In this document: positions 6,323 through 64,000 of the stretch, in pieces
How positions within the stretch are numbered: position 1 is the first letter of the stretch
How the letters are laid out: each line of letters starts with the position of its first letter
Assembly: GCA_044892505.1 (NCBI GenBank)
Contig: CM097882.1
Location: 19,902,001 to 19,966,000 of the forward strand
Direction: 5' to 3'
Length of the DNA stretch: 64,000 nt
Source: Schmidtea nova
Lineage: Eukaryota
Position numbers and translations under genes: made by a program
Notes under the pieces: model-generated
Seen by the model: the letters and a program-made list of their open reading frames with translations, nothing else
Database searches by the model: none
Told to the model about the DNA's origin: nothing

Positions 6323-6412
6323 ATCAATAAAAGAGTTTACGACATATTCAATGACCTTCGTGATGGGATCCTTTTATTGAATTTATTAGAAGTATTGAGC
6401 GATCAAAAATTG
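6323..6412 (+). CDS. Spectraplakin exon, CH1 ([30 protein letters not shown])
   Basis: tttag/gttcg boundaries, 90 bp, phase 0-0; DLRDG..L..LLEVLS is the spectrin-family CH1 signature. Confidence 0.92.
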
Positions 6413-9400: not shown

Positions 9401-10770
9401 GTTTTTTGAATTTATTATATAGGGTAAACTCGGCTTTCTCCGTGACACGGCTAAATTCGTGATATCAAAGTAAAAATGCACCATTGAGGTTTACATACGG
9501 TTTTATGTAAATGTTTATCCATCACACTATTAGATTAAACTATTCCGCAGCCTAAGGGACTGGCTGGTTCCATTTATATATAATAGATATTAATTTATGT
9601 AGAATCTTTACAACTTTGCTTGTTAATATAACTTTTTTGTTAATATAATGTATTTTTTTTAAAGTATTGAATTCAAATGCTAGTATGCTACGAAAATATT
9701 GACATTTAATTTATTAAAAATATGTTTGTAATAACATAATAAAAATTTTTTAAAAATTTAAACTCAACAAATGGCTCCCAGGAAGATTAGCCATAGCATC
9801 ACGAAGTTACACAAAAAGAACATGGTTGGTTTAAACGTTTATAAGTTTGAACTCACAAACAGATTTCAAAATTTGAAATGATAAATTAGTAGACGAATCA
9901 TATACCGGGGCATACATAGTTGTCAGATATCTATGGTTTCTTTTAAAATATTAAGAGAATTCCTTAATATCACGAACTTAGCCGAGTTTACCCTATTATT
10001 TAATTTATAATTTTCTATGTTCCTATATTATTTATTTTGTTTTTTTATTAATCTCAATGAATTGTCAAACATTTTTTAAAATAAATTTTGAAACTTTTTA
10101 TACTATATTAAAATATTTGTTGTTGTCCCTGTTGGTCATGGTAAAAATCTGGCAACCCTAATATAAATCCATCCTGGTAGTCAAGGAGGATAATTAAAAA
10201 TAAAATAAATAAATAATCAAAAATTATCGTTTTCCCTGTCCATTCAATTGAACTACTGACTCGAAAGCAACAGCGAATATGATTGTATGAGCTTATAAAA
10301 ATAATAAATTTTATTTTATTCTAATTTCATCGATTAATTGCCATTCGTAGAAAGCATACGCCATGAATATGAACAAGTTTGTGTGTAATTTGTATGCATA
10401 ATGAATCAGCTCGTGTCATAACAATTATTTGTTAATCATATATTCAGATAAAACTGGTAAACATTCATGCTGAAGACTTGGTCGATGGCAATCCAAAATT
10501 AACTCTCGGACTTGTTTGGATAATAATACTTTTCTTTCAGGTAAATGTTAATGTTTACATAAAAATTGATAATAATTTTTTTTCGAATTAAACAAGTGCA
10601 ATTATTAAATTTTTATTTTAATGTTTATCAATATGTTAGCTGTTTTGATATTTTTGTCTTACATTTCATGATTTTCAATTCATAAACAAAACAATTTCTA
10701 AATTTTCTTTCTCTCTATTTAGCTTTTCATAAGGCATTTGATCAATATATTTTATTTAATAAAACAAAAT

Positions 10771-44600: not shown

Positions 44601-47600
44601 CGGTCTGTCCAGTTTCAATCAAAAATACCACAGAAGGTTTTCCTTCAGCAGTGGATTTGGCAATTTCATGCCTTTCTTCACAATTATTCCATTCTAATGT
44701 TGTCATACTAACAATGTTTCGTTCACTTTCATTATTGAGTTAACTTATTCCTGTAAAAAAATTAGGAGCGGATTTTTTATTTTCTGATACGATTGCAGCA
44801 GCTTTAACTTGGCTGGCTATACAGTTTTTCCGTTTCCGGGGAACAAATTCTTGCATTCACTTCATATTTCAGTTGTTAGGCTACGCAAAGAATATATTAT
44901 TTATAGTAAGAATTAAAGTTTATAAAATAATTTAAAAAAATATTGATTTCCTAAAAAAATACTGGCGACAACAGCAAAACTCAACACAACAACAAAATAA
45001 ACAATAACAAAAAACAAATGAAATCAATAAAGTATGTCGTGTAACATGTCAAATAACTCAATTATCACTCTCTGAAGAAATCCAAGAACAGGATTAATCC
45101 GAAAAGAAAACATTACCGGTTTTGAAATTTTAAGGATTAAATTATTTATGTTTCCCCGAAAAATTAGTGCCCTCGAAATTTGCTTAATTTGTCTGTGGCA
45201 TAATACACCACTGATCCTACCAGATACTTCAATAATAACCCATTATCAAATATGCATCAATGATTTTAAAGATGAAAATAAAAATAAAATAATTATATAT
45301 AAACAATAAATCAAACTGTAGCTTTATTTTGAAAAAGTAAGAAAATTAAACATTATTAGTTCATTATTAATTTTATTTTTATTTTTAAAGAGAAAGTTAC
45401 CTAATGTCACAAATGATGTAGACGAATTGTTAAATATAATTAACAATAAATATAAATCATTAAATAAACGAGAAAAGATTGAAAATAAAAAAGAATTATC
45501 ATCATTTTCATATTCATATATACCAATACAAGAAACATCTGAAGAAATATTATTAGTAAATGAAGGTCCGATAATAACAATCGAAAAAAGTCAAAGAATA
45601 GAAAGGAAAATAAATTTAATAACAGCAATGAAAAATAAATTAATAAATACAAAAAATATGACAATTAAAATATCACAAACCGGAACAATAAAATGTTTAT
45701 ATGAAGCTATTAAAGAAAATCTTATTGACGAAGAAAAAACATTATTTCAAGAAATAAAAACTGGACATGTAGTAACTCTACAAGAATTATTAGAAAAAAA
45801 TATTCCACTAAAAGATATAATAAAATTAACAAAAGAGTATTTAGAAAAAGATAAATCTTGTAAAATAAATGAAAACAAGGATCAAAGTAAAAGCAAAAAA
45901 AGAAAAGTTGATCATCTAACAAAAATTGAAAATAATAAAGAAGTAAACGCAATATACGATTCAGCAAAAAGACAAAATGTGTCTCTTTCTGAAATGCTAA
46001 CAAGCGAAAAAGAAAGAATTGATAAAGAAAAGCATAGAGAATTAGAAAAGATCAGTATGGAATATTCAACTGACGCGCAACACTTGACTTTGGATGAAGC
46101 AATTGAAAGAGGTCTTGTAGACACAATGCGAGGAACGATACGAGATCCTATTTCTGGAAAAGAAATTTCATTACAAGAAGCAATTGCAAAAGGAATAATC
46201 GACGCGGAAAATAGCGCAATATATGATGCAGAGAAAGGACAAACTGTGTCTCTTTCTGAAATGCTAAGGAGCGGAAAAGATATGAAAGCTTTGCTAATAA
46301 GCGAAAAAGAAAGAATTGATAAAGAAAAGCATGGAGAATTAGAAAAGATCAGTATGGAATATTCAACTGACGCGCAACACTTGACTTTGGATGAAGCAAT
46401 TGAAAGAGGTCTTGTAGACACAATGCGAGGAACGATACGAGATCCTATTTCTGGAAAAGAAATTTCATTACAAGAAGCAATTGCAAAAGGAATAATCGAC
46501 GCGGAAAATAGCGCAATATATGATGCAGAGAAAGGACAAACTGTGTCTCTTTCTGAAATGCTAAGTAGCGGAAAAGATATGAAAGCTTTGCTAACAAGCG
46601 AAAAAGAAAGAATTGATAAAGAAAAGCATGTGGAATTAGAAAAGTTAAGTATGGAATATTCAACTGATGCGCAACACTTCACTTTGGATGAAGCAATTGA
46701 AAGAGGTCTTGTAGACACAATGCGAGGAACGATACGAGATCCTTTTTCTGGAAAAGAAATTTCATTACAAGAAGCAATTGCAAAAGGAATAATCGACGCG
46801 GAAAATAGCGCAATATATGATGCAGAGAAAGGGCAAACTGTGTCTCTTTCTGAAATGCTAAGGAGCGGAAAAGATATGAAAGCTTTGCTAACAAGCGAAA
46901 AAGAAAGAATTGATAAAGAAAAGCATGGAGAATTAGAAAAGATCAGTATGGAATATTCAACTGATGCGCAACACTTGACTTTGGATGAAGCAATTGAAAG
47001 AGGTCTTGTAGACACAATGCGAGGAACGATACGAGATCCTATTTCTGGAAAAGAAATTTCATTACAAGAAGCAATTGCAAAAGGAATAATCGACGCGGAA
47101 AATAGCGCAATATATGATGCAGAGAAAGGACAAACTGTGTCTCTTTCTGAAATGCTAAGTAGCGGAAAAGATATGAAAGCTTTGCTAACAAGCGAAAAAG
47201 AAAGAATTGATAAAGAAAAGCATGGAGAATTAGAAAAGATCAGTATGGAATATTCAACTGACGCGCAACACTTGACTTTGGATGAAGCAATTGAAAGAGG
47301 TCTTGTAGACACAATGCGAGGAACGATACGAGATCCTATTTCTGGAAAAGAAATTTCATTACAAGAAGCAATTGCAAAAGGAATAATCGACGCGGAAAAT
47401 AGCGCAATATATGATGCAGAGAAAGGACAAACTGTGTCTCTTTCTGAAATGCTAAGTAGCGGAAAAGATATGAAAGCTTTGCTAACAAGCGAAAAAGAAA
47501 GAATTGATAAAGAAAAGCATGGAGAATTAGAAAAGATCAGTATGGAATATTCAACTGACGCGCAACACTTGACTTTGGATGAAGCCATTGAAAGAGGTCT

Positions 47601-50600
47601 TGTAGACACAATGCGAGGAACGATACGAGATCCTATTTCTGGAAAAGAAATTTCATTACAAGAAGCAATTGCAAAAGGAATAATCGACGCGGAAAATAGC
47701 GCAATATATGATGCAGAGAAAGGACAAACTGTGTCTCTTTTTGAAATGCTAAGGAGCGGAAAAGATATGAAAGCTTTGCTAACAAGCGAAAAAGAAATAA
47801 TTGTGAAAGAAAAGCATGGAGAATTAGAAAAGATCAGTATGGAATATTCAACTGACGCGCAACACTTGACTTTGGATGAAGCAATTGAAAGAGGTCTTGT
47901 AGACACGATGCGAGGAACGATACGAGATCCTATTTCTGGAAAAGAAATTTCATTACAAGAAGCAATTGCAAAAGGAATAATCGACGCGGAAAATAGCGCA
48001 ATATATGATGCAGAGAAAGGACAAACTGTGTCTCTTTCTGAAATGCTAAGGAGCGGAAAAGATATGAAAGCTTTGCTAACAAGCGAAAAAGAAAGAATTG
48101 ATAAAGAAAAGCATGGAGAATTAGAAAAGATCAGTATGGAATATTCAACTGACGCGCAACACTTGACTTTGGATGAAGCAATTGAAAGAGGTCTTGTAGA
48201 CACAATGCGAGGAACGATACGAGATCCTATTTCTGGAAAAGAAATTTCATTACAAGAAGCAATTGCAAAAGGAATAATTGACGCGGAAAATAGCGCAATA
48301 TATGATGCAGAGAAAGGACAAACTGTGTCTCTTTCTGAAATGCTAAGGAGCGGAAAAGATATGAAAGCTTTGCTAACAAGCGAAAAAGAAAGAATTGATA
48401 AAGAAAAGCATGGAGAATTAGAAAAGATCAGTATGGAATATTCAACTGACGCGCAACACTTGACTTTGGATGAAGCAATTGAAAGAGGTCTTGTAGACAC
48501 AATGCGAGGAACGATACGAGATCCTATTTCTGGAAAAGAAATTTCATTACAAGAAGCAATTGCAAAAGGAATAATCGACGCGGAAAATAGCGCAATATAT
48601 GATGCAGAGAAAGGACAAACTGTGTTTCTTTCTGAAATGCTAAGGAGCGGAAAAGATATGAAAGCTTTGCTAACAAGCGAAAAAGAAATAATTGTGAAAG
48701 AAAAGCATGGAGAATTAGAAAAGATCAGTATGGAATATTCAACTGATGCGCAACACTTGACTTTGGATGAAGCAATTGAAAGAGGTCTTGTAGACACAAT
48801 GCGAGGAACGATACGAGATCCTATTTCTGGAAAAGAAATTTCATTACAAGAAGCAATTGCAAAAGGAATAATCGACGCGGAAAATAGCGCAATATATGAT
48901 GCAGAGAAAGGACAAACTGTGTCTCTTTCTGAAATGCTAAGTAGCGGAAAAGATATGAAAGCTTTGCTAACAAGCGAAAAAGAAAGAATTGATAAAGAAA
49001 AGCATGGAGAATTAGAAAAGATCAGTATGGAATATTCAACTGACGCGCAACACTTGACTTTGGATGAAGCAATTGAAAGAGGTCTTGTAGACACAATGCG
49101 AGGAACGATACGAGATCCTATTTCTGGAAAAGAAATTTCATTACAAGAAGCAATTGCAAAAGGAATAATCGACGTGGAAAATAGCGCAATATATGATGCA
49201 GAGAAAGGACAAACTGTGTCTCTTTCTGAAATGCTAAGTAGCCGAAAAGATATGAAAGCTTTGCTAACAAGCGAAAAAGAAAGAATTGATAAAGAAAAGC
49301 ATGGAGAATTAGAGAAGATCAGTATGGAATATTCAACTGACGCGCAACACTTGACTTTGGATGAAGCAATTGAAAGAGGTCTTGTAGACACAATGCGAGG
49401 AACGATACGAGATCCTATTTCTGGAAAAGAAATTTCATTACAAGAAGCAATTGCAAAAAGGATAATCGACGCGGAAAATAGCGCAATATATGATGCAGAG
49501 AAAGGACAAACTGTGTCTCTTTCTGAAATGCTAAGGAGCGGAAAAGATATGAAAGCTTTGCTAACAAGCGAAAAAGAAAGAATTGATAAAGAAAAGCATG
49601 GAGAATTAGAAAAGATCAGTATGGAATATTCAACTGACGCGCAACACTTGACTTTGGATGAAGCAATTGAAAGAGGTCTTGTAGACACAATGCGAGGAAC
49701 GATACGAGATCCTATTTCTGGAAAAGAAATTTCATTACAAGAAGCAATTGCAAAAGGAATAATCGACGCGGAAAATAGCGCAATATATGATGCAGAGAAA
49801 GGACAAACTGTGTCTCTTTCTGAAATGCTAAGGAGCGGAAAAGATATGAAAGCTTTGCTAACAAGCGAAAAAGAAAGAATTGATAAAGAAAAGCATGGAG
49901 AATTAGAAAAGATCAGTATGGAATATTCAACTGACGCGCAACACTTGACTTTGGATGAAGCAATTGAAAGAGGTCTTGTAGACACAATGCGAGGAACGAT
50001 ACGAGATCCTATTTCTGGAAAAGAAATTTCATTACAAGAAGCAATTGCAAAAGGAATAATCGAAGCGGAAAATAGCGCAATATATGATGCAGAGAAAGGA
50101 CAAACTGTGTTTCTTTCTGAAATGCTAAGGAGCGGAAAAGATATGAAAGCTTTGCTAACAAGCGAAAAAGAAATAATTGTGAAAGAAAAGCATGGAGAAT
50201 TAGAAAAGATCAGTATGGAATATTCAACTGATGCGCAACACTTGACTTTGGATGAAGCAATTGAAAGAGGTCTTGTAGACACAATGCGAGGAACGATACG
50301 AGATCCTATTTCTGGAAAAGAAATTTCATTACAAGAAGCAATTGCAAAAGGAATAATCGACGCGGAAAATAGCGCAATATATGATGCAGAGAAAGGACAA
50401 ACTGTGTCTCTTTCTGAAATGCTAAGTAGCGGAAAAGATATGAAAGCTTTGCTAACAAGCGAAAAAGAAAGAATTGATAAAGAAAAGCATGGAGAATTAG
50501 AAAAGATCAGTATGGAATATTCAACTGGCGCGCAACACTTGACTTTGGATGAAGCCATTGAAAGAGGTCTTGTAGACACAATGCGAGGAACGATACGAGA

Positions 50601-53600
50601 TCCTATTTCTAAAAAAGAAATTTCATTACAAGAAGCAATTGCAAAAGGAATAATCGACGTGGAAAATAGCGCAATATATGATGCAGAGAAAGGACAAACT
50701 GTGTCTCTTTCTGAAATGCTAAGTAGCGGAAAAGATATGAAAGCTTTGCTAACAAGCGAAAAAGAAAGAATTGATAAAGAAAAGCATGGAGAATTAGAAA
50801 AGATCAGTATGGAATATTCAACTGACGCGCAACACTTGACTTTGGATGAAGCAATTGAAAGAGGTCTTGTAGACACAATGCGAGGAACGATACGAGATCC
50901 TATTTCTGGAAAAGAAATTTCATTACAAGAAGCAATTGCAAAAGGAATAATCGACGCGGAAAATAGCGCAATATATGATGCAGAGAAAGGACAAACTGTG
51001 TCTCTTTCTGAAATGCTAAGGAGCGGAAAAGATATGAAAGCTTTGCTAACAAGCGAAAAAGAAATAATTGTGAAAGAAAAGCATGGAGAATTAGAAAAGA
51101 TCAGTATGGAATATTCAACTGATGCGCAACACTTGACTTTGGATGAAGCAATTGAAAGAGGTCTTGTAGACACAATGCGAGGAACGATACGAGATCCTAT
51201 TTCTGGAAAAGAAATTTCATTACAAGAAGCAATTGCAAAAGGAATAATCGACGCGGAAAATAGCGCAATATATGATGCAGAGAAAGGACAAACTGTGTCT
51301 CTTTCTGAAATGCTAAGTAGCGGAAAAGATATGAAAGCTTTGCTAACAAGCGAAAAAGAAAGAATTGATAAAGAAAAGCATGGAGAATTAGAAAAGATCA
51401 GTATGGAATATTCAACTGACGCGCAACACTTGACTTTGGATGAAGCAATTGAAAGAGGTCTTGTAGACACAATGCGAGGAACGATACGAGATCCTATTTC
51501 TGGAAAAGAAATTTCATTACAAGAAGCAATTGCAAAAGGAATAATCGACGCGGAAAATAGCGCAATATATGATGCAGAGAAAGGACAAACTGTGTCTCTT
51601 TCTGAAATGCTAAGGAGCGGAAAAGATATGAAAGCTTTGCTAACAAGCGAAAAAGAAAGAATTGATAAAGAAAAGCATGGAGAATTAGAAAAGATCAGTA
51701 TGGAATATTCAACTGACGCGCAACACTTGACTTTGGATGAAGCAATTGAAAGAGGTCTTGTAGACACAATGCGAGGAACGATACGAGATCCTATTTCTGG
51801 AAAAGAAATTTCATTACAAGAAGCAATTGCAAAAGGAATAATCGACGCGGAAAATAGCGCAATATATGATGCAGAGAAAGGACAAACTGTGTCTCTTTCT
51901 GAAATGCTAAGGAGCGGAAAAGATATGAAAGCTTTGCTAACAAGCGAAAAAGAAAGAATTGATAAAGAAAAGCATGGAGAACTAGAAAAGATCAGTATGG
52001 AATATTCAACTGACGCGCAACACTTGACTTTGGATGAAGCAATTGAAAGAGGTCTTGTAGACACAATGCGAGGAACGATACGAGATCCTATTTCTGGAAA
52101 AGAAATTTCATTACAAGAAGCAATTGCAAAAGGAATAATCGACGCGGAAAATAGCGCAATATATGATGCAGAGAAAGGACAAACTGTGTTTCTTTCTGAA
52201 ATGCTAAGGAGCGGAAAAGATATGAAAGCTTTGCTAACAAGCGAAAAAGAAATAATTGTGAAAGAAAAGCATGGAGAATTAGAAAAGATCAGTATGGAAT
52301 ATTCAACTGATGCGCAACACTTGACTTTGGATGAAGCAATTGAAAGAGGTCTTGTAGACACAATGCGAGGAACGATACGAGATCCTATTTCTGGAAAAGA
52401 AATTTCATTACAAGAAGCAATTGCAAAAGGAATAATCGACGCGGAAAATAGCGCAATATATGATGCAGAGAAAGGACAAACTGTGTCTCTTTCTGAAATG
52501 CTAAGTAGCGGAAAAGATATGAAAGCTTTGCTAACAAGCGAAAAAGAAAGAATTGATAAAGAAAAGCATGGAGAATTAGAAAAGATCAGTATGGAATATT
52601 CAACTGACGCGCAACACTTGACTTTGGATGAAGCAATTGAAAGAGGTCTTGTAGACACAATGCGAGGAACGATACGAGATCCTATTTCTGGAAAAGAAAT
52701 TTCATTACAAGAAGCAATTGCAAAAGGAATAATCGACGCGGAAAATAGCGCAATATATGATGCAGAGAAAGGACAAACTGTGTCTCTTTCTGAAATGCTA
52801 AGGAGCGGAAAAGATATGAAAGCTTTGCTAACAAGCGAAAAAGAAATAATTGTGAAAGAAAAGCATGGAGAATTAGAAAAGATCAGTATGGAATATTCAA
52901 CTGACGCGCAACACTTGACTTTGGATGAAGCAATTGAAAGAGGTCTTGTAGACACAATGCGAGGAACGATACGAGATCCTATTTCTGGAAAAGAAATTTC
53001 ATTACAAGAAGCAATTGCAAAAGGAATAATCGACGTGGAAAATAGCGCAATATATGATGCAGAGAAAGGACAAACTGTGTCTCTTTCTGAAATGCTAAGT
53101 AGCGGAAAAGATATGAAAGCTTTGCTAACAAGCGAAAAAGAAAGAATTGATAAAGAAAAGCATGGAGAATTAGAAAAGATCAGTATGGAATATTCAACTG
53201 ATGCGCAACACTTCACTTTGGATGAAGCAATTGAAAGAGGTCTTGTAGACACAATGCGAGGAACGATACGAGATCCTATTTCTGGAAAAGAAATTTCATT
53301 ACAAGAAGCAATTGCAAAAGGAATAATCGACGCGGAAAATAGCGCAATATATGATGCAGAGAAAGGACAAACTGTGTCTCTTTCTGAAATGCTAAGTAGC
53401 GGAAAAGATATGAAAGCTTTGCTAACAAGCGAAAAAGAAAGAATTGATAAAGAAAAGCATGGAGAATTAGAAAAGATCAGTATGGAATATTCAACTGACG
53501 CGCAACACTTGACTTTGGATGAAGCAATTGAAAGAGGTCTTGTAGACACAATGCGAGGAACGATACGAGATCCTATTTCTGGAAAAGAAATTTCATTACA

Positions 53601-56600
53601 AGAAGCAATTGCAAAAGGAATAATCGACGCGGAAAATAGCGCAATATATGATGCAGAGAAAGGACAAACTGTGTCTCTTTCTGAAATGCTAAGTAGCGGA
53701 AAAGATATGAAAGCTTTGCTAACAAGCGAAAAAGAAAGAATTGATAAAGAAAAGCATGGAGAATTAGAAAAGATCAGTATGGAATATTCAACTGATGCGC
53801 AACACTTCACTTTGGATGAAGCAATTGAAAGAGGTCTTGTAGACACAATGCGAGGAACGATACGAGATCCTATTTCTGGAAAAGAAATTTCATTACAAGA
53901 AGCAATTGCAAAAGGAATAATCGACGCGGAAAATAGCGCAATATATGATGCAGAGAAAGGACAAACTGTGTCTCTTTCTGAAATGCTAAGTAGCGGAAAA
54001 GATATGAAAGCTTTGCTAACAAGCGAAAAAGAAAGAATTGATAAAGAAAAGCATGGAGAATTAGAAAAGATCAGTATGGAATATTCAACTGACGCGCAAC
54101 ACTTGACTTTGGATGAAGCAATTGAAAGAGGTCTTGTAGACACAATGCGAGGAACGATACGAGATCCTATTTCTGGAAAAGAAATTTCATTACAAGAAGC
54201 AATTGCAAAAGGAATAATCGACGCGGAAAATAGCGCAATATATGATGCAGAGAAAGGACAAACTGTGTCTCTTTCTGAAATGCTAAGTAGCGGAAAAGAT
54301 ATGAAAGCTTTGCTAACAAGCGAAAAAGAAAGAATTGATAAAGAGAATCATGGAGAATTAGAAAAGATCAGTATGGAATATTCAACTGACGCGCAACACT
54401 TGACTTTGGATGAAGCAATTGAAAGAGGTCTTGTAGACACAATGCGAGGAACGATACGAGATCCTATTTCTGGAAAAGAAATTTCATTACAAGAAGCAAT
54501 TGCAAAAGGAATAATCGACGCGGAAAATAGCGCAATATATGATGCAGAGGAAGGACAAACTGTGTCTCTTTCTGAAATGCTAAGTAGCGGAAAAGATATG
54601 AAAGCTTTGCTAACAAGCGAAAAAGAAAGAATTGATAAAGAAAAGCATGGAGAATTAGAAAAGATCAGTATGGAATATTCAACTGACGCGCAACACTTGA
54701 CTTTGGATGAAGCCATTGAAAGAGGTCTTGTAGACACAATGCGAGGAACGATACGAGATCCTATTTCTGGAAAAGAAATTTCATTACAAGAAGCAATTGC
54801 AAAAGGAATAATCGACGCGGAAAATAGCGCAATATATGATGCAGAGAAAGGACAAACTGTGTCTCTTTCTGAAATGCTAAGTAGCCGAAAAGATATGAAA
54901 GCTTTGCTAACAAGCGAAAAAGAAAGAATTGATAAAGAAAAGCATGGAGAATTAGAAAAGATCAGTATGGAATATTCAACTGATGCGCAACACTTGACTT
55001 TGGATGAAGCAATTGAAAGAGGTCTTGTAGACACAATGCGAGGAACGATACGAGATCCTATTTCTGGAAAAGAAATTTCATTACAAGAAGCAATTGCAAA
55101 AGGAATAATCGACGCGGAAAATAGCGCAATATATGATGCAGAGAAAGGACAAACTGTGTCTCTTTCTGAAATGCTAAGGAGCGGAAAAGATATGAAAGCT
55201 TTGCTAACAAGCGAAAAAGAAAGAATTGATAAAGAAAAGCATGGAGAATTAGAAAAGATCAGTATGGAATATTCAACTGACGCGCAACACTTGACTTTGG
55301 ATGAAGCAATTGAAAGAGGTCTTGTAGACACAATGCGAGGAACGATACGAGATCCTATTTCTGGAAAAGAAATTTCATTACAAGAAGCAATTGCAAAAGG
55401 AATAATCGACGCGGAAAATAGCGCAATATATGATGCAGAGAAAGGACAAACTGTGTCTCTTTCTGAAATGCTAAGTAGCGGAAAAGATATGAAAGCTTTG
55501 CTAACAAGCGAAAAAGAAAGAATTGATAAAGAAAAGCATGGAGAATTAGAAAAGATCAGTATGGAATATTCAACTGACGCGCAACACTTGACTTTGGATG
55601 AAGCAATTGAAAGAGGTCTTGTAGACACAATGCGAGGAACGATACGAGATCCTATTTCTGGAAAAGAAATTTCATTACAAGAAGCAATTGCAAAAGGAAT
55701 AATCGACGCGGAAAATAGCGCAATATATGATGCAGAGAAAGGACAAACTGTGTCTCTTTCTGAAATGCTAAGGAGCGGAAAAGATATGAAAGCTTTGCTA
55801 ACAAGCGAAAAAGAAATAATTGTGAAAGAAAAGCATGGAGAATTAGAAAAGATCAGTATGGAATATTCAACTGACGCGCAACACTTGACTTTGGATGAAG
55901 CAATTGAAAGAGGTCTTGTAGACACAATGCGAGGAACGATACGAGATCCTATTTCTGGAAAAGAAATTTCATTACAAGAAGCAATTGCAAAAGGAATAAT
56001 CGACGCGGAAAATAGCGCAATATATGATGCAGAGAAAGGACAAACTGTGTCTCTTTCTGAAATGCTAAGGAGCGGAAAAGATATGAAAGCTTTGCTAACA
56101 AGCGAAAAAGAAAGAATTGATAAAGAAAAGCATGGAGAATTAGAAAAGATCAGTATGGAATATTCAACTGATGCGCAACACTTGACTTTGGATGAAGCAA
56201 TTGAAAGAGGTCTTGTAGACACAATGCGAGGAACGATACGAGATCCTATTTCTGGAAAAGAAATTTCATTACAAGAAGCAATTGCAAAAGGAATAATCGA
56301 CGCGGAAAATAGCGCAATATATGATGCAGAGAAAGGACAAACTGTGTCTCTTTCTGAAATGCTAAGGAGCGGAAAAGATATGAAAGCTTTGCTAACAAGC
56401 GAAAAAGAAAGAATTGATAAAGAAAAGCATGGAGAATTAGAAAAGATCAGTATGGAATATTCAACTGACGCGCAACACTTGACTTTGGATGAAGCAATTG
56501 AAAGAGGTCTTGTAGACACAATGCGAGGAACGATACGAGATCCTATTTCTGGAAAAGAAATTTCATTACAAGAAGCAATTGCAAAAGGAATAAACGACGC

Positions 56601-59600
56601 GGAAAATAGCGCAATATATGATGCAGAGAAAGGACAAACTGTGTCTCTTTCTGAAATGCTAAGTAGCGGAAAAGATATGAAAGCTTTGCTAACAAGCGAA
56701 AAAGAAAGAATTGATAAAGAAAAGCATGGAGAATTAGAAAAGATCAGTATGGAATATTCAACTGACGCGCAACACTTCACTTTGGATGAAGCAATTGAAA
56801 GAGGTCTTGTAGACACAATGCGAGGAACGATACGAGATCCTATTTCTGGAAAAGAAATTTCATTACAAGAAGCAATTGCAAAAGGAATAATCGACGCGGA
56901 AAATAGCGCAATATATGATGCAGAGAAAGGACAAACTGTGTCTCTTTCTGAAATGCTAAGGAGCGGAAAAGATATGAAAGCTTTGCTAACAAGCGAAAAA
57001 GAAAGAATTGATAAAGAAAAGCATGGAGAATTAGAAAAGATCAGTATGGAATATTCAACTGACGCGCAACACTTGACTTTGGATGAAGCAATTGAAAGAG
57101 GTCTTGTAGACACAATGCGAGGAACGATACGAGATCCTATTTCTGGAAAAGAAATTTCATTACAAGAAGCAATTGCAAAAGGAATAATCGACGCGGAAAA
57201 TAGCGCAATATATGATGCAGAGAAAGGACAAACTGTGTCTCTTTCTGAAATGCTAAGTAGCGGAAAAGATATGAAAGCTTTGCTAACAAGCGAAAAAGAA
57301 AGAATTGATAAAGAAAAGCATGGAGAATTAGAAAAGATCAGTATGGAATATTCAACTGGCGCGCAACACTTGACTTTGGATGAAGCCATTGAAAGAGGTC
57401 TTGTAGACACAATGCGAGGAACGATACGAGATCCTATTTCTGGAAAAGAAATTTCATTACAAGAAGCAATTGCAAACGGAATAATCGACGCGGAAAATAG
57501 CGCAATATATGATGCAGAGAAAGGACAAACTGTGTCTCTTTCTGAAATGCTATGTAGCGGAAAAGATATGAAAGCTTTGCTAACAAGCGAAAAAGAAAGA
57601 ATTGATAAAGAAAAGCATGGAGAATTAGAAAAGATCAGTATGGAATATTCAACTGACGCGCAACACTTGACTTTGGATGAAGCAATTGAAAGAGGTCTTG
57701 TAGACACAATGCGAGGAACGATACGAGATCCTATTTCTGGAAAAGAAATTTCATTACAAGAAGCAATTGCAAAAGGAATAATCGACGCGGAAAATAGCGC
57801 AATATATGATGCAGAGAAAGGACAAACTGTGTCTCTTTCTGAAATGCTAAGGAGCGGAAAAGATATGAAAGCTTTGCTAACAAGCGAAAAAGAAATAATT
57901 GTGAAAGAAAAGCATGGAGAATTAGAAAAGATCAGTATGGAATATTCAACTGACGCGCAACACTTGACTTTGGATGAAGCAATTGAAAGAGGTCTTGTAG
58001 ACACAATGCGAGGAACGATACGAGATCCTATTTCTGGAAAAGAAATTTCATTACAAGAAGCAATTGCAAAAGGAATAATCGACGCGGAAAATAGCGCAAT
58101 ATATGATGCAGAGAAAGGACAAACTGTGTCTCTTTCTGAAATGCTAAGTAGCGGAAAAGATATGAAAGCTTTGCTAACAAACGAAAAAGAAAGAATTGAT
58201 AAAGAAAAGCATGGAGAATTAGAAAAGATCAGTATGGAATATTCAACTGATGCGCAACACTTGACTTTGGATGAAGCAATTGAACGAGGTCTTGTAGACA
58301 CAATGCGAGGAACGATACGAGATCCTATTTCTGGAAAAGAAATTTCATTACAAGAAGCAATTGCAAAAGGAATAATCGACGCGGAAAATAGCGCAATATA
58401 TGATGCAGAGAAAGGACAAACTGTGTCTCTTTCTGAAATGCTAAGTAGCGGAAAAGATATGAAAGCTTTGCTAACAAGCGAAAAAGAAAGAATTGATAAA
58501 GAAAAGCATGGAGAATTAGAAAAGATCAGTATGGAATATTCAACTGATGCGCAACACTTGACTTTGGATGAAGCAATTGAAAGAGGTCTTGTAGACACAA
58601 TGCGAGGAACGATACGAGATCCTATTTCTGGAAAAGAAATTTCATTACAAGAAGCAATTGCAAAAGGAATAATCGACGCGGAAAATAGCGCAATATATGA
58701 TGCAGAGAAAGGACAAACTGTGTCTCTTTCTGAAATGCTAAGTAGCCGAAAAGATATGAAAGCTTTGCTAACAAGCGAAAAAGAAAGAATTGATAAAGAA
58801 AAGCATGGAGAATTAGAAAAGATCAGTATGGAATATTCAACTGATGCGCAACACTTGACTTTGGATGAAGCAATTGAAAGAGGTCTTGTAGACACAATGC
58901 GAGGAACGATACGAGATCCTATTTCTGGAAAAGAAATTTCATTACAAGAAGCAATTGCAAAAGGAATAATCGACGCGGAAAATAGCGCAATATATGATGC
59001 AGAGAAAGGACAAACTGTGTCTCTTTCTGAAATGCTAAGTAGCGGAAAAGATATGAAAGCTTTGCTAACAAGCGAAAAAGAAAGAATTGATAAAGAAAAG
59101 CATGGAGAATTAGAAAAGATCAGTATGGAATATTCAACTGACGCGCAACACTTGACTTTGGATGAAGCAATTGAAAGAGGTCTTGTAGACACAATGCGAG
59201 GAACGATACGAGATCCTATTTCTGGAAAAGAAATTTCATTACAAGAAGCAATTGCAAAAGGAATAATCGACGCGGAAAATAGCGCAATATATGATGCAGA
59301 GAAAGGACAAACTGTGTCTCTTTCTGAAATGCTAAGTAGCGGAAAAGATATGAAAGCTTTGCTAACAAGCGAAAAAGAAAGAATTGATAAAGAAAAGCAT
59401 GGAGAATTAGAAAAGATCAGTATGGAATATTCAACTGACGCGCAACACTTGACTTTGGATGAAGCCATTGAAAGAGGTCTTGTAGACACAATGCGAGGAA
59501 CGATACGAGATCCTATTTCTGGAAAAGAAATTTCATTACAAGAAGCAATTGCAAACGGAATAATCGACGCGGAAAATAGCGCAATATATGATGCAGAGAA

Positions 59601-62600
59601 AGGACAAACTGTGTCTCTTTCTGAAATGCTATGTAGCGGAAAAGATATGAAAGCTTTGCTAACAAGCGAAAAAGAAAGAATTGATAAAGAAAAGCATGGA
59701 GAATTAGAAAAGATCAGTATGGAATATTCAACTGACGCGCAACACTTGACTTTGGATGAAGCAATTGAAAGAGGTCTTGTAGACACAATGCGAGGAACGA
59801 TACGAGATCCTATTTCTGGAAAAGAAATTTCATTACAAGAAGCAATTGCAAAAGGAATAATCGACGCGGAAAATAGCGCAATATATGATGCAGAGAAAGG
59901 ACAAACTGTGTCTCTTTCTGAAATGCTAAGGAGCGGAAAAGATATGAAAGCTTTGCTAACAAGCGAAAAAGAAATAATTGTGAAAGAAAAGCATGGAGAA
60001 TTAGAAAAGATCAGTATGGAATATTCAACTGACGCGCAACACTTGACTTTGGATGAAGCAATTGAAAGAGGTCTTGTAGACACAATGCGAGGAACGATAC
60101 GAGATCCTATTTCTGGAAAAGAAATTTCATTACAAGAAGCAATTGCAAAAGGAATAATCGACGCGGAAAATAGCGCAATATATGATGCAGAGAAAGGACA
60201 AACTGTGTCTCTTTCTGAAATGCTAAGTAGCGGAAAAGATATGAAAGCTTTGCTAACAAGCGAAAAAGAAAGAATTGATAAAGAAAAGCATGGAGAATTA
60301 GAAAAGATCAGTATGGAATATTCAACTGATGCGCAACACTTGACTTTGGATGAAGCAATTGAAAGAGGTCTTGTAGACACAATGCGAGGAACGATACGAG
60401 ATCCTATTTCTGGAAAAGAAATTTCATTACAAGAAGCAATTGCAAAAGGAATAATCGACGCGGAAAATAGCGCAATATATGATGCAGAGAAAGGACAAAC
60501 TGTGTCTCTTTCTGAAATGCTAAGTAGCGGAAAAGATATGAAAGCTTTGCTAACAAGCGAAAAAGAAAGAATTGATAAAGAAAAGCATGGAGAATTAGAA
60601 AAGATCAGTAGGGAATATTCACCTGACGCGCAACACTTGACTTTGGATGAAGCAATTGAAAGAGGTCTTGTAGACACAATGCGAGGAACGATACGAGATC
60701 CTATTTCTGGAAAAGAAATTTCATTACAAGAAGCAATTGCAAAAGGAATAATCGACGCGGAAAATAGCGCAATATATGATGCAGAGAAAGGACAAACTGT
60801 GTCTCTTTCTGAAATGCTAAGTAGCGGAAAAGATATGAAAGCTTTGCTAACAAGCGAAAAAGAAAGAATTGATAAAGAAAAGCATGGAGAATTAGAAAAG
60901 ATCAGTATGGAATATTCAACTGACGCGCAACACTTGACTTTGGATGAAGCCATTGAAAGAGGTCTTGTAGACACAATGCGAGGAACGATACGAGATCCTA
61001 TTTCTGGAAAAGAAATTTCATTACAAGAAGCAATTGCAAAAGGAATAATCGACGCGGAAAATAGCGCAATATATGATGCAGAGAAAGGACAAACTGTGTC
61101 TCTTTCTGAAATGCTATGTAGCGGAAAAGATATGAAAGCTTTGCTAACAAGCGAAAAAGAAAGAATTGATAAAGAAAAGCATGGAGAATTAGAAAAGATC
61201 AGTATGGAATATTCAACTGACGCGCAACACTTGACTTTGGATGAAGCAATTGAAAGAGGTCTTGTAGACACAATGCGAGGAACGATACGAGATCCTATTT
61301 CTGGAAAAGAAATTTCATTACAAGAAGCAATTGCAAAAGGAATAATCGACGCGGAAAATAGCGCAATATATGATGCAGAGAAAGGACAAACTGTGTCTCT
61401 TTCTGAAATGCTAAGTAGCGGAAAAGATATGAAAGCTTTGCTAACAAGCGAAAAAGAAAGAATTGATAAAGAAAAGCATGGAGAATTAGAAAAGATCAGT
61501 ATGGAATATTCAACTGACGCGCAACACTTGACTTTGGATGAAGCAATTGAAAGAGGTCTTGTAGACACAATGCGAGGAACGATACGAGATCCTATTTCTG
61601 GAAAAGAAATTTCATTACAAGAAGCAATTGCAAAAGGAATAATCGACGCGGAAAATAGCGCAATATATGATGCAGAGAAAGGACAAACTGTGTCTCTTTC
61701 TGAAATGCTAAGTAGCGGAAAAGATATGAAAGCTTTGCTAACAAGCGAAAAAGAAAGAATTGATAAAGAAAAGCATGGAGAATTAGAAAAGATCAGTATG
61801 GAATATTCAACTGATGCGCAACACTTGACTTTGGATGAAGCCATTGAAAGAGGTCTTGTAGACACAATGCGAGGAACGATACGAGATCCTATTTCTGGAA
61901 AAGAAATTTCATTACAAGAAGCAATTGCAAAAGGAATAATCGACGCGGAAAATAGCGCAATATATGATGCAGAGAAAGGACAAACTGTGTCTCTTTCTGA
62001 AATGCTAAGTAGCGGAAAAGATATGAAAGCTTTGCTAACAAGCGAAAAAGAAAGAATTGATAAAGAAAAGCATCGAGAATTAGAAAAGATCAGTATGGAA
62101 TATTCAACTGACGCGCAACACTTGACTTTGGATGAAGCAATTGAAAAAGGTCTTGTAGACACAATGCGAGGAACGATACGAGATCCTATTTCTGGAAAAG
62201 AAATTTCATTACAAGAAGCAATTGCAAAAGGAATAATCGACGCGGAAAATAGCGCAATATATGATGCAGAGAAAGGACAAACTGTGTCTCTTTCTGAAAT
62301 GCTAAGGAGCGGAAAAGATATAAAAGCTTTGCTAACAAGCGAAAAAGAAAGAATTGATAAAGAAAAGCATGGAGAATTAGAAAAGATCAGTATGGAATAT
62401 TCAACTGACGCGCAACACTTGACTTTGGATGAAGCAATTGAAAAAGGTCTTGTAGACACAATGCGAGGAACGATACGAGATCCTATTTCTGGAAAAGAAA
62501 TTTCATTACAAGAAGCAATTGCAAAAGGAATAATCGACGCGGAAAATAGCGCAATATATGATGCAGAGAAAGGACAAACTGTGTCTCTTTCTGAAATGCT

Positions 62601-64000
62601 AAGTAGCGGAAAAGATATGAAAGCTTTGCTAACAAGCGAAAAAGAAAGAATTGATAAAGAAAAGCATGGAGAATTAGAAAAGATCAGTATGGAATATTCA
62701 ACTGGCGCGCAACACTTGACTTTGGATGAAGCCATTGAAAGAGGTCTTGTAGACACAATGCGAGGAACGATACGAGATCCTATTTCTGGAAAAGAAATTT
62801 CATTACAAGAAGCAATTGCAAAAGGAATAATCGACGCGGAAAATAGCGCAATATATGATGCAGAGAAAGGACAAACTGTGTCTCTTTCTGAAATGCTAAG
62901 TAGCGGAAAAGATATGAAAGCTTTGCTAACAAGCGAAAAAGAAAGAATTGATAAAGAAAAGCATGGAGAATTAGAAAAGATCAGTATGGAATATTCAACT
63001 GACGCGCAACACTTGACTTTGGATGAAGCAATTGAAAGAGGTCTTGTAGACACAATGCGAGGAACGATACGAGATCCTATTTCTGGAAAAGAAATTTCAT
63101 TACAAGAAGCAATTGCAAAAGGAATAATCGACGCGGAAAATAGCGCAATATATGATGCAGAGAAAGGACAAACTGTGTCTCTTTCTGAAATGCTAAGTAG
63201 CGGAAAAGATATGAAAGCTTTGCTAACAAGCGAAAAAGAAAGAATTGATAAAGAAAAGCATGGAGAATTAGAAAAGATCAGTATGGAATATTCAACTGAT
63301 GCGCAACACTTGACTTTGGATGAAGCAATTGAAAGAGGTCTTGTAGACACAATGCGAGGAACGATACGAGATCCTATTTCTGGAAAAGAAATTTCATTAC
63401 AAGAAGCAATTGCAAAAGGAATAATCGACGCGGAAAATAGCGCAATATATGATGCAGAGAAAGGACAAACTGTGTCTCTTTCTGAAATGCTAAGTAGCGG
63501 AAAAGATATGAAAGCTTTGCTAACAAGCGAAAAAGAAATAATTGTGAAAGAAAAGCATGGAGAATTAGAAAAGATCAGTATGGAATATTCAACTGACGCG
63601 CAACACTTGACTTTGGATGAAGCAATTGAAAAAGGTCTTGTAGACACAATGCGAGGAACGATACGAGATCCTATTTCTGGAAAAGAAATTTCATTACAAG
63701 AAGCAATTGCAAAAGGAATAATCGACGCGGAAAATAGCGCAATATATGATGCAGAGAAAGGACAAACTGTGTCTCTTTCTGAAATGCTAAGTAGCGGAAA
63801 AGATATGAAAGCTTTGCTAACAAGCGAAAAAGAAAGAATTGATAAAGAAAAGCATGGAGAATTAGAAAAGATCAGTATGGAATATTCAACTGACGCGCAA
63901 CACTTGACTTTGGATGAAGCCATTGAAAGAGGTCTTGTAGGCACAATGCGAGGAACGATACGAGATCCTATTTCTGGAAAAGAAATTTCATTACAAGAAG
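6323..64000 (+). CDS. shot: Spectraplakin/plakin gene (Shot/MACF1/dystonin/VAB-10 family), multi-exon, 5' end of CH1 and 3' end not in view
   Basis: Domain order from hand-spliced GT-AG exons with compatible phases: CH1, CH2, plakin spectrin repeats, SH3, spectrin repeats, plectin-repeat exons. About 26.2 kb of CDS visible. The symbol denotes the family; exact orthology is untested. Confidence 0.9.
7499..7576 (+). CDS. Spectraplakin exon, CH1 ([26 protein letters not shown])
   Basis: ttcag/gtaagt boundaries, 78 bp, phase 0-0; RFH.LEN...LDFL motif. Confidence 0.92.
8990..9290. mobile_element. hAT (Blackjack-like) MITE
   Basis: TATGGTTGCCAGG...CCTGGCAACACTA; flanks ATATACAT/ATTTACAG (6/8). 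An orphan related end CTGGCAACCCTA lies near 10150-10160. Confidence 0.65.
9422..9993. mobile_element. Non-autonomous TIR element, about 570 bp, superfamily unassigned
   Basis: GGGTAAACTCGGCT...AGCCGAGTTTACCC perfect 14-bp TIR, TA on both sides. Confidence 0.8.
10448..10540 (+). CDS. Spectraplakin exon, end of CH1 ([31 protein letters not shown])
   Basis: ttcag/gtaaat boundaries, 93 bp; canonical KLVNI..ED.VDGN.KLTLGL.W.IIL motif. Confidence 0.95.
10778..10828. repeat. (TA)n microsatellite
   Basis: Directly visible; others at about 14036-14068 and 38584-38623. Confidence 0.95.
10900..11430. repeat. Degenerate tandem repeat of about 165-175 bp, 3-4 copies
   Basis: A CATAAAAATGAC(C/T)TAG.TATTTGCTTAC...AGTT(A/G)CTATAGA-like core recurs near 10905, 11080, 11243 and partially at 11401. 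Confidence 0.7.
11960..12870 (-). pseudogene. Heavily decayed coding remnant, possibly a hAT-like transposase
   Basis: Interrupted minus-strand translations ([12 protein letters not shown]; ILALSATET..) resemble transposase C-terminal segments; many stops and frameshifts. Confidence 0.3.
14159..14975 (-). pseudogene. hAT (ZMYM1-like) transposase pseudogene
   Basis: Three consecutive minus-strand ORF pieces; the last is [41 protein letters not shown] (hAT dimerisation domain). Confidence 0.92.
19862..20081. mobile_element. piggyBac-like MITE, 220 bp
   Basis: TTAA|CCCTTTGAACCCT...AGGGTTCAAAGGT|TTAA. Confidence 0.85.
20903..21122. mobile_element. piggyBac-like MITE, 220 bp
   Basis: TTAA|CCCATGCCGTACCAAGCC...GGCTTGGTACGGCATGGG|TTAA, perfect 18-bp TIR. 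Confidence 0.92.
21572..21738 (+). CDS. Spectraplakin exon, CH2 start ([56 protein letters not shown])
   Basis: ttcag/gtcagt boundaries, phase 0-2; LL.W...NF.TSW.DG.AF.ALIH motif. Confidence 0.93.
21925..22040 (+). CDS. Spectraplakin exon, CH2 ([38 protein letters not shown])
   Basis: tatag/gtaaaa boundaries, phase 2-1; PDLID...NLE.AF..A.KELG motif. Confidence 0.95.
22102..22382 (+). CDS. Spectraplakin exon, CH2 end and start of plakin domain ([20 protein letters not shown]...)
   Basis: 61-bp intron upstream, phase 1-0; DEKS.MTYV.SL motif; overlaps ORF 22014..22406. Confidence 0.92.
22444..22653 (+). CDS. Spectraplakin exon, plakin spectrin repeat
   Basis: tttag/gtattt boundaries, 210 bp open, phase 0-0, helical sequence with a spectrin-type W (STLWSKFE). 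Confidence 0.85.
23277..23686 (-). pseudogene. rpl18a: Processed pseudogene of 60S ribosomal protein L18a (eL20)
   Basis: [52 protein letters not shown] aligns by eye with the L18a N-terminus; YYSRSGIH corresponds to YDSRSGTH. Intronless, with frameshifts and a stop. Confidence 0.88.
24558..24718 (+). CDS. Spectraplakin exon, plakin domain (...[16 protein letters not shown])
   Basis: ttcag/gtgaga boundaries, phase 0-2; resembles the plakin VQ.LK.G.HP..Q.YR motif. Confidence 0.85.
24771..24981 (+). CDS. Spectraplakin exon, plakin domain; donor site hidden in N-run
   Basis: 52-bp intron upstream, phase-2 start, open to the N-run at 24982 (..[19 protein letters not shown]). Confidence 0.8.
24982..26239. 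other. Three N-runs (150, 484 and 533 bp) separated by two near-identical 45-46 bp foldback-family fragments
   Basis: cgaaatagtgttattgtttataaaaaaa(a)ttttgatctatagtcat at 25132 and 25662. Confidence 0.95.
26340..26420. repeat. (TAA)n microsatellite
   Basis: Directly visible. Confidence 0.95.
26534..26616 (+). CDS. Spectraplakin exon, plakin domain
   Basis: tttag/gtaaaa boundaries; reads [28 protein letters not shown]. The 5' boundary is less certain because the upstream donor is in Ns. Confidence 0.7.
26663..26740 (+). CDS. Spectraplakin exon, plakin domain
   Basis: 46-bp intron upstream, 78 bp, phase 0-0 ([26 protein letters not shown]). Confidence 0.8.
26794..26958 (+). CDS. Spectraplakin exon, plakin domain
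   Basis: 53-bp intron upstream, 165 bp; [27 protein letters not shown] matches the plakin L..F...A..E..W...KEE....DW pattern. Confidence 0.85.
27271..28530 (+). mobile_element. Penelope-like retroelement, 5'-truncated, frameshifted RT plus GIY-YIG endonuclease
   Basis: [35 protein letters not shown] motifs; then [30 protein letters not shown]. Confidence 0.93.
28621..28865. other. Foldback MITE half followed by an N-run (28694-28865, 172 bp)
   Basis: cacacttgataaaggctgtgc...ttttgatctatagt matches the right arm of the 2564-2709 element. Confidence 0.85.
29410..29514 (+). CDS. Spectraplakin exon, plakin domain
   Basis: gtag/gttaat boundaries, 105 bp; [35 protein letters not shown] corresponds to ELE.KE..I.......L...NHPA...IE. 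Confidence 0.88.
29574..29795 (+). CDS. Spectraplakin exon, plakin domain
   Basis: tttag/gtaaaa boundaries, 222 bp; [25 protein letters not shown] matches the plakin .Q.QWSW.LQL..C.E.H...Y.QFF motif. Confidence 0.92.
29857..30873 (-). mobile_element. Non-autonomous hAT transposon, about 1 kb, 8-bp TSD
   Basis: TIRs CATAGGCGCCAGCAG / CTGCGGGCGCTCATG; flanks CATATAAC/CATACAAC (7/8); internal [36 protein letters not shown]. Confidence 0.92.
30944..31064. mobile_element. Foldback MITE, diverged copy
   Basis: AGACCAGATCAAA...GGCACCGCCTTTT / AAAAGGCAGTGC...TCTAGTCCT. Confidence 0.7.
31930..32406 (+). CDS. Spectraplakin exon containing the plakin SH3 domain
   Basis: ORF 31933..32433; VKAIC...LINNS....WKV....E...PAICFLI is the plakin SH3 motif; phase 0-0. 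Confidence 0.93.
32463..32804 (+). CDS. Spectraplakin exon, spectrin repeats
   Basis: 56-bp intron upstream, ends aaa/gtaagt, 342 bp; overlaps ORF 32487..32834. Confidence 0.88.
33114..33425. mobile_element. hAT-like MITE
   Basis: CAGTGGCGTAAC...GTTACGCCTCTG TIR with GGGCGCC subterminal motifs; TSD not resolved. Confidence 0.75.
33470..33529. mobile_element. Minimal foldback MITE (termini only)
   Basis: AGGACTAGATCAAAAA...TTTTCGATCTATTGTCT. Confidence 0.6.
33760..34165. mobile_element. Degenerate hAT-like MITE
   Basis: GCCTGGATTTACCCTTAGGCTG..AGCCTAG.GCCTC left end and AGCCTTGGGCCCCC right subterminal motif; ends eroded. Confidence 0.45.
34962..35264 (+). CDS. Spectraplakin exon, spectrin repeat
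   Basis: ttcag/gtaaaa boundaries, 303 bp; ORF 34998..35276 (DLWEQLW). Confidence 0.88.
35314..35510 (+). CDS. Spectraplakin exon, spectrin repeat
   Basis: tgcag/gttagt boundaries, phase 0-2; ORF 35308..35544. Confidence 0.85.
35564..35816 (+). CDS. Spectraplakin exon, spectrin repeat
   Basis: tttag/gtgatt boundaries, phase 2-0; LKTIQSWI...[13 protein letters not shown]. Confidence 0.87.
35892..37060. mobile_element. TTAA-flanked non-autonomous element (piggyBac/Kolobok-like) with an internal duplication of about 200 bp
   Basis: TTAA|CCCC...GGGG|TTAA; direct repeat at about 36310-36530 and 36865-37060. Confidence 0.55.
36200..36269 (-). repeat. tRNA-derived SINE head or tRNA pseudogene (Thr-CGT-like)
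   Basis: Reverse complement GGCCTTCTTGGTTTTGGAGTAACGTGCGTGCTTCGTAATTAAAGAGTCCAGGATTTGAATCTCGGTGAAG has decayed A and B boxes and a TTCGTAA loop. Confidence 0.5.
38960..39543 (+). mobile_element. Decayed Penelope-like element remnant
   Basis: SYLPSAIY..., RIA...SE and FFLSNYHP-like segments recall the PLE RT thumb region; multiple stops. Confidence 0.4.
39582..43586 (+). CDS. Spectraplakin large exon, diverged plectin (plakin) repeats, 1335 aa
   Basis: atatag/gtaatt boundaries, 4005 bp, phase 0-0; ORF 39678..43649; many [IL]SL.EA...G[LI]ID / DP..G motifs ([49 protein letters not shown]). Confidence 0.93.
43960..45213 (-). pseudogene. Decayed hAT (ZMYM/DUF4371-type) transposase N-terminal half with one terminus
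   Basis: Minus strand [39 protein letters not shown] corresponds to GLAFRGHD..GNF..L; TAATACACCACTG terminus (CAGTGGTGTATTA) at 45201-45213. Confidence 0.7.
45391..64000 (+). CDS. Giant spectraplakin exon: about 190 aa unique leader, then more than 60 tandem 99-aa plectin-repeat units; runs off the window
   Basis: Polypyrimidine tract and ttttaaag acceptor at 45390 (phase 0, matches the donor at 43586). Unit reads [82 protein letters not shown](S/R)[17 protein letters not shown] saw no in-frame stop. Absent from the ORF track because no stop closes it. Confidence 0.88.
45950..64000 (+). repeat. 297-bp coding tandem array, more than 60 copies
   Basis: The motif cgagatccta at 46141 recurs at 63961, 17,820 bp = exactly 60 x 297 later. 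Units differ by only a few substitutions. Confidence 0.97.

Follow-up and report, generated by a model that had tools for sequence, protein, structure and literature searches.

The closest described systems are the Drosophila gene shot and epiplakin (EPPK1). A single large optional exon of shot (10,497 nucleotides, nt) encodes 33 plakin repeats between the plakin domain and the spectrin rod and gives rise to isoforms of up to 8,846 residues. Its repeats are short or diverged in the second helix, are not grouped in 4.5-repeat domains, and were considered poor candidates for the 4.5-repeat globule (PMC2173965). Epiplakin is encoded by one very large exon and consists of canonical plakin repeat domains and linkers alone; within a species its 13-16 domains are homogenised, and their number differs from species to species and probably also inside one (PMC8782857). 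Beyond the plakins, tandem coding repeats, concerted evolution and outsized exons are shared by the class of spidroins, titin and mucins, and the longest exons given by Ayoub et al. measure 17 kb in human, 15 kb in C. elegans and 27.7 kb in D. melanogaster (PMC3563967). The present analysis concerns a giant plakin-repeat exon in a spectraplakin gene of Schmidtea nova, found in a stretch of 64,000 nt (the window; positions 19902001-19966000 of contig C1 in the 1.25-Gb genome G000) and followed through another 140 kb taken downstream.

The exon measures 59,544 nt and carries 198 tandem copies of a 99-residue unit. It is probably a real, transcribed, internal coding exon whose units, kept alike by concerted evolution, would form a spacer-like string of beads. 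Like shot, the gene has one large, optional plakin-repeat exon between the plakin domain and the rod, with short motifs that are not arranged in 4.5-repeat domains, and it would likewise yield a very long isoform. In contrast to the 33 diverged repeats of shot, there are 198 units at 98.9% identity, each with a charged helical linker, in an exon about six times as long, and a separate 4-kb exon of diverged repeats is present in addition. Epiplakin comprises plakin repeat domains alone with the whole coding sequence on one exon, whereas the exon described here is internal and spliced at its 5' side, and repeats a unit of 2.5 short motifs inside a CH-plakin-spectrin-EF-hand-GAS2 gene. It likewise differs from spidroins and mucins: the exon is internal and spliced, and it encodes part of a cytoskeletal linker inside the cell rather than a secreted fibre or mucin. 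The kind is thus known, from the optional giant exon of shot and the homogenised single-exon domains of epiplakin; what is new is its scale and its regularity. In length the exon is about double the largest listed for model animals, and it far exceeds any plakin-repeat region described so far; literature searches returned no report of the unit's peptides or of a comparable spectraplakin array.

The giant exon and its tandem units

Positions above 64000 are given as extended window coordinates, the C1 position being 19,902,000 + x. A plus-strand frame runs without a stop from 45322 to extended 104956, with 6,226 of its codons inside the window. The other two sense frames contain hundreds of stops in the window, and 1,484 and 1,607 stops over the whole array DNA, which excludes an opening by chance. 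Within the open frame, the exon (45391-104934, plus strand) is in phase 0 at both ends. It begins at the acceptor ttttaaag/AGA (45390/45391, the AG at 45389-90) and closes at the donor GAG/GTAAGT (extended 104934/104935, C1:20006934), seven codons before the frame ends. The exon that follows opens at a strong acceptor (extended 106975), also in phase 0, and neither AATAAA nor ATTAAA was found within 1 kb downstream of the giant exon. The computed product has 19,848 residues, a mass of 2.20 MDa and an isoelectric point (pI) of 4.8. The first-pass annotation of the window had described an exon of more than 18.6 kb with over 60 modules, still open at the window edge, and had named in-frame stops in the full translation among the signs that would speak against it. 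The single giant coding exon and its continuation past the edge stand and the 19,848 codons contain no stop, but the size was threefold too small.

Tandem Repeats Finder reports a period of 297 bp over 45995-64000 (60.6 copies, 98% matches, 0% indels), and the unit table agrees with it on an exact period with few substitutions per unit, as first noted for 60 units. Over extended 45997-104802 there are 198 units, each exactly 297 bp, in register and free of indels. Their identity to the consensus is 98.9% on average and lowest in the last unit (94.9%), and all 60 full units in the window (60/60) depart from the 99-residue consensus by 0-4 residues. At the other edge, the exon head contains a strongly diverged unit copy, 27% identical to the unit over 160-190 residues (blastp), which is what would be expected of array edges that escape homogenisation.

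The 198 units comprise 111 distinct sequences, and multi-unit blocks recur at lags of 4, 7, 11, 14, 18, 25 and 36 units. The largest repeated block spans 24 units (7.1 kb); its two copies (extended 81934-89061 and 89359-96486) lie in tandem at lag 25 and differ at 3 sites, and parts of it appear a third time at lags 11 and 36. This duplication is the youngest large one in the array and also the likeliest spot for an assembly error. The recurrence of blocks is the mark of unequal crossing-over, not of an assembler copying a block exactly.

An exhaustive search of representative proteins gave 558 matches, all but one of them large invertebrate-type plakin-repeat proteins at 25-39% identity. The exception, P0011 (UniParc UPI0005FF9CDE), is a fragment of 1,124 residues made of 11 copies of the 99-residue unit, and is the sole database trace of the unit. 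Its consensus is identical to that of the array at 87 of 99 positions. Half of the 12 fixed differences lie in the 31-residue linker, and most are conservative (I/M, R/K, M/L, K/R, T/S). The units of P0011 match their own consensus at 93-99 of 99 positions and show a 5-unit higher-order period. Back-translated patterns of two P0011-specific peptides had no match in this genome, whereas the equivalent array-unit control had 180; P0011 therefore comes from another genome, and its candidacy as a paralogue within this one was rejected. Units are more alike within a genome than between genomes, which points to an array that existed before the split from the source of P0011 and has evolved in concert, and not just to a recent burst. 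The recent, lineage-specific runaway expansion proposed at first is thus not the best reading. A search for contigs encoding P0011 found none. A protein search with a four-unit query, restricted by a length window, returned only distant fragments at 22-36% identity.

Among the large invertebrate proteins are P0012 (4,924 residues, a single 14.8-kb open reading frame, ORF), P0014 (6,207 residues) and P0153 (5,241 residues). Proteins of this type resemble the array in having short plakin-motif arrays. The aligned stretch covers about 260 residues, has few gaps and shows 26-31% identity, and it implies a shared super-repeat of about 100 residues. In alignments with the distant homologues, motifs a, b and c match the unit. 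The homologues then continue with complete third and fourth motifs where the unit has its charged helix. Their repeats are also diverged (self-identity below 0.35), apart from P0011 and P0153, the latter having a homogenised repeat with a period of 486 residues and 85% self-identity. None of these library proteins comes near 198 near-identical copies.

Predicted fold of the unit

The array matches the Pfam Plectin profile (PF00681) with an E-value of 1.4e-41 and 140.5 bits against a cut-off of 20.5, over profile positions 9-34 of 39. Among solved structures, desmoplakin and envoplakin alone are matched in sequence. Each unit contains 2.5 motifs spaced by 27 residues rather than 38, with the second helix missing. 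The unit table, Pfam and the alignment concur with the initial description: two plakin motifs are clear, though short, a third is truncated, and a charged linker is present.

The AlphaFold2 model of three units, built on a 71-sequence alignment, has a pLDDT (predicted local distance difference test) of 85.4 and a pTM (predicted template modelling score) of 0.42. Residues of about 30-95 of the unit form a confident module (pLDDT above 90), made up of a short helix plus two beta-hairpins with a helix after each, and a helix of 26-30 residues is predicted across each unit boundary at a pLDDT of 56-82. The single-unit model agrees (pLDDT 76.9, pTM 0.60). Foldseek places the repeat domains of desmoplakin, envoplakin and periplakin on top for both models, at TM-scores (template modelling scores) of at most 0.25. 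The best E-value is 1e-4 (three-unit model, 5dzz) and the best probability 0.72 (single-unit model, 1lm5_B), with 35% identity over 51 columns. Re-scoring of the three-unit model with VIA-align gave nothing at Z of 3 or above. The canonical plakin repeat domain, in which 4.5 repeats of 38 residues make one globule, appears neither in the sequence nor in the models. The models thus suggest that the local plakin motif is kept and the canonical domain is not formed. The AlphaFold check that had been proposed yields beads on a string and no classic 4.5-repeat domain; of the two arrangements then envisaged, a continuous array or two-unit domains, the models show neither, each unit being predicted to fold separately.

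The unit is acidic, with a net charge of -7 and a pI of 4.8, and so is the module (net -6, pI 4.5). Compared computationally with an ER/K single alpha-helix, the 31-residue linker has 4 opposite-charge pairs at i,i+4 and an H-G in its middle. Vertebrate plakin repeat domains reportedly bind intermediate filaments through a basic groove (Choi 2002, Fogl 2016). The acidic charge computed for the unit would argue against binding of this kind.

These properties bear on the possibility that the units work as classical plakin repeats, which would make the array a highly multivalent anchor, either for junctional partners or for intermediate filaments of the cytoplasm, with copy number setting avidity and not length. 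The Plectin match is strong, the domains matched best in structure and sequence, those of desmoplakin, envoplakin and periplakin, bind filaments, and epiplakin is a precedent in which homogenised plakin repeat domains are numerous and bind keratin (PMC8782857). Multivalent binding, the main functional rival to a spacer, is nevertheless the less likely reading, given the shortened motif spacing, the 2.5 motifs per unit, the low TM-scores to solved plakin repeat domains and the acidic charge of the unit, which would fit poorly with a basic groove; moreover, the fly lacks cytoplasmic intermediate filaments, and its Shot repeats work at junctions (PMC2173965).

Transcription, copy number and reading frame

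No sequencing run is on record as RNA for this genome. Runs X1, X2 and X5 were taken as DNA, as their contigs cover the intron between the two plakin-repeat exons. The nature of run X7 is not on record either; it was read as complementary DNA (cDNA) from the missing intron, with zero depth over 43749-45324, and from primer-like loose ends. These ends we take to be the reverse complement of the Nanopore cDNA strand-switch primer. Record 25 of X7 (4,629 nt) matches 40400-43586 and then 45398-46024, the seven bases between the segments being a low-complexity stretch passed over by the alignment tool. The 43586/45391 junction, which the first-pass annotation had singled out for checking, has its sites in phase and is used by a cDNA-derived contig. 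The giant exon is transcribed and spliced at its 5' side. X7 contigs also span a unit-to-unit junction (46290 to 45995), and their summed depth is 2,950-5,080 on the unit against 27.7 on the upstream unique exon. Spread over 198 units, this amounts to 15-26 per unit, a value near 27.7, and most transcripts with the upstream exon thus seem to carry most of the array. The 3' junction would join 104934 to 106975, and the exon would be included in RNA at full length.

A transcribed array could still yield the giant protein as a minor product, if the exon were mostly skipped, if it were terminal in the manner of VAB-10A or BPAG1e, or if full translation were rare. In the terminal variant, the product would end 7 codons past the unused donor, where the frame indeed closes. 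Isoforms that end in plakin repeats are made by C. elegans and mouse (PMC2173965), both plakin-repeat exons here are phase 0/0 cassettes, and the 5' junction is the sole one observed in RNA. This outcome is nonetheless rather improbable, in view of the per-unit RNA depth close to that of the upstream exon, the strong donor followed by an in-phase acceptor, and the lack of a poly(A) signal within 1 kb. That 59 kb contain neither a stop nor an indel also shows selection for reading through the entire array.

The assembled length was weighed in a similar way. A 36-mer from the computed unit consensus occurs 191 times genome-wide, always on the forward strand, and also 191 times within the array, and every one of the 100 places listed falls inside the array. 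The equality of the two counts makes a second locus feeding the read depth very unlikely. Depth was taken as summed contig word depths on one unit against the single-copy flank, and such sums are not copy numbers and give rough support. For X1, about 9,450-9,580 on the unit against 40 on the flank gives a ratio of ~235; for X5, about 3,020-3,100 against 14-16 gives about 190-220; and for X2, 890-1,850 against 13-14 gives about 65-135. The ratios of X1 and X5 (~235 and ~200) fit the 198 assembled copies, so the read-depth check called for at the outset comes out, roughly, in favour of the array.

There remains a small chance that the array length is a product of assembly, in which case the true array would be much shorter or longer and the 59.5-kb length wrong, with the repeat itself real. 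Near-identical 297-bp repeats are hard to assemble, the 24-unit block returns at lag 25 with merely 3 differences, the X2 ratio is low, and no read spanning the whole array was seen. Opposed to this are the 111 distinct units in an ordered variant pattern, the depth ratios of X1 and X5, the 36-mer count that admits no other inflating locus, and an array without any N gap.

The pattern of variation indicates what is maintained. Among the units there are 126 distinct single-base variants, 29 of them synonymous (62 sites) and 97 non-synonymous (235 sites). Within the array, pN/pS (non-synonymous against synonymous variants per site) comes to about 0.9; taken separately, the module gives 0.90 and the linker 0.81. 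Replacing an amino acid in one unit is thus nearly neutral, with little constraint on individual units. Stops behave otherwise: 4.6-5.6% of random substitutions in the consensus would create one, so that 5.8-7.1 stop variants are expected, and 0 are observed (P = 0.003-0.0009). The antisense frame, which is open in the consensus and serves as an internal neutral control, has 5 stops in 58.8 kb. Selection guards the reading frame through the whole array, as would be expected if the rod and the GAS2 end that lie downstream have to be translated.

Two long ORFs run through the array on the minus strand, at 45912-54143 and 54348-63944 (2,743 and 3,198 codons). With 42% A and 23% G, the sense strand is rich in purines, and the antisense ORFs are most simply a by-product of this composition.

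That the array is a non-coding satellite lying open by compositional chance in a spectraplakin intron, as the purine-rich strand and the antisense ORFs might suggest, is highly improbable, and a chance ORF of this kind was rejected on the observed splicing into the array (X7), the Plectin match of the units, the 0 sense stops against 5 antisense and about 6-7 expected, the 198 units without an indel, the retention of the unit in another genome with mostly conservative changes, and the compatible splice phases on both sides.

For the exon as a coding string of beads, the following mechanism is proposed. Unequal crossing-over and gene conversion hold the 198 units near-identical, and recombination would readily alter the length of the array. 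Selection acts mainly on the open frame, as a stop or frameshift would cost the rod, the EF-hand and the GAS2 microtubule-binding end. Each 99-residue unit would fold alone into a small acidic module, built of two plakin motifs (each a beta-hairpin plus a helix) and part of a third, and a linker that is a charged alpha-helix of about 26-30 residues. In this way the exon would place 198 beads, 2.2 MDa in all, between the head that binds actin and the tail that binds microtubules. Such a string would chiefly serve as a spacer or scaffold of great length, possibly extensible, and might in addition bind partners weakly and multivalently. The phase 0/0 of both plakin-repeat exons means that they can be skipped without a break of frame, and short and giant isoforms hence probably coexist.

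Several points count against this mechanism. The spacer rests on a prediction with uncertain inter-unit geometry, as the pTM of the three-unit model indicates, and the junction observed in RNA is the one at the 5' side. With regard to the array itself, the lower ratio of X2, the missing spanning read, a possible origin of the DNA runs from the same sample as the assembly, and a pN/pS close to that of neutral change in single units are to be set on the same side.

If the modelled string were extended, it could span about one micrometre, at a rough 6-7 nm per unit estimated from helix length plus module size. A further step is more tentative, and its chances are put at somewhat below even: full translation may give a protein of roughly at least 25,000 residues (about 3 MDa), acting as a micrometre-scale ruler or spring from actin to microtubules that is tunable by recombination and varies in length between individuals and species. 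The size is an estimate made by adding the 19,848 residues of the exon to the 6,100-7,400 of homologues without it.

The surrounding spectraplakin gene

The features of the locus are collected in the table below. Four full-length homologues (P0047, P0092, P0089 and P0063; 6,100-7,400 residues) are collinear with the locus in the order CH, plakin domain, plakin repeats, rod and EF/GAS2. The hallmarks of a spectraplakin are all found on the same strand and in the same order: a CH domain, a plakin domain with SH3, and a spectrin rod followed by EF-hand and GAS2. By domain content and collinearity, the gene is a spectraplakin, in one orthologue class with MACF1, dystonin, Shot and VAB-10. The earlier assignment to this family is thereby borne out, with CH, SH3_10, Spectrin, EF-hand and GAS2 matches on the exons. 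The predicted domain order puts the giant exon between the plakin domain and the spectrin-repeat rod, and we infer a single transcript joining all these domains. One CH domain was located; a second possibly lies in small exons or upstream of the window. The first plakin-repeat exon is bounded by the acceptor ...atatag/AAT (39581/39582) and the donor CAG/GTAATT (43586/43587), matches Pfam Plectin (E 3.7e-44), is 21-26% identical to the array unit, and is covered by an X7 contig.

Table. Features of the spectraplakin locus in window and extended coordinates
Feature	Position	Strand	Remarks
CH domain exon region	21566..21859	+	Pfam CH PF00307, E 2e-9; tblastn matches from P0092 and P0089
Plakin-domain SH3 exon region	31921..32430	+	Pfam SH3_10 PF17902, E 6.4e-12; P0089 residues 1400-1553 align
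Plakin-domain spectrin repeat exon region	34950..35273	+	Weak Pfam Spectrin match, E 0.005, below gathering score; P0092 residues 1087-1185 align
First plakin-repeat exon	39582..43586	+	4,005 nt, 1,335 codons, phase 0/0; about 25 diverged short plakin motifs
Intron between plakin-repeat exons	43587..45390	+	1,804 nt, GT..AG; contigs of X1, X2 and X5 present, X7 depth zero
Head of giant exon	45391..45996	+	202 codons; unique sequence, then strongly diverged unit copy; covered by X7 record 25
Array units 1-60.6 of 198	45997..64000	+	In-window share, less than a third; array end at extended 104802 (C1:20006802)
Rod spectrin repeats	extended 110-146 kb	+	Several Pfam Spectrin matches
EF-hand and GAS2	extended 153341-153676	+	Pfam matches

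Outside the exons, 2-kb windows have 22-32% guanine plus cytosine, and the genome is very AT-rich. Long AAT/ATT-type microsatellites are typical of it (e.g., extended 126963-127352, 151811-153089 and 180730-181332) and read as poly-Asn or poly-Ile ORFs. Within an intron of the gene, at 27560-28551 on the plus strand, ORFs including a GIY-YIG nuclease domain (Pfam E 2.3e-6) lie beside a 241-codon ORF and possibly represent a Penelope-like retroelement insertion. Downstream of the gene lies a cluster of large ORFs (L011:4177-9054 and L012:1787-6130; extended 168-180 kb). One has an A32-like or AAA packaging-type ATPase (E 6e-7), another, 1,448 codons long, matches endonuclease VII weakly, and the cluster is possibly a large mobile element of DNA type, akin to Maverick/Polinton. 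Further on, an ORF with a strong DDE_1 transposase domain (L013:230-1387, extended 184230-185387; E 2.1e-41) is likely a pogo/Tigger-type transposon. Stretches of N occur in the window at 2288-2417, 24982-26239 (in pieces) and 28694-28865.

For gene annotation, the locus is both a caution and a benchmark, as short-read assemblies and gene callers break or miss exons of this kind. It also opens the questions of how long a spliced coding exon and its mRNA can be, and of how concerted evolution keeps 59 kb in frame. Spectraplakins are conserved integrators of actin, microtubules and junctions, and the locus represents a natural extreme of their plakin-repeat region, about six times as large as in shot and made from one small, regular unit whose folding is predictable. 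The role of this region outside vertebrates is still unclear, and the array makes it testable whether the short motif is a binding site or a structural bead. If the exon is translated in full as a ruler or spring, it would represent a new mechanical use of the plakin repeat.

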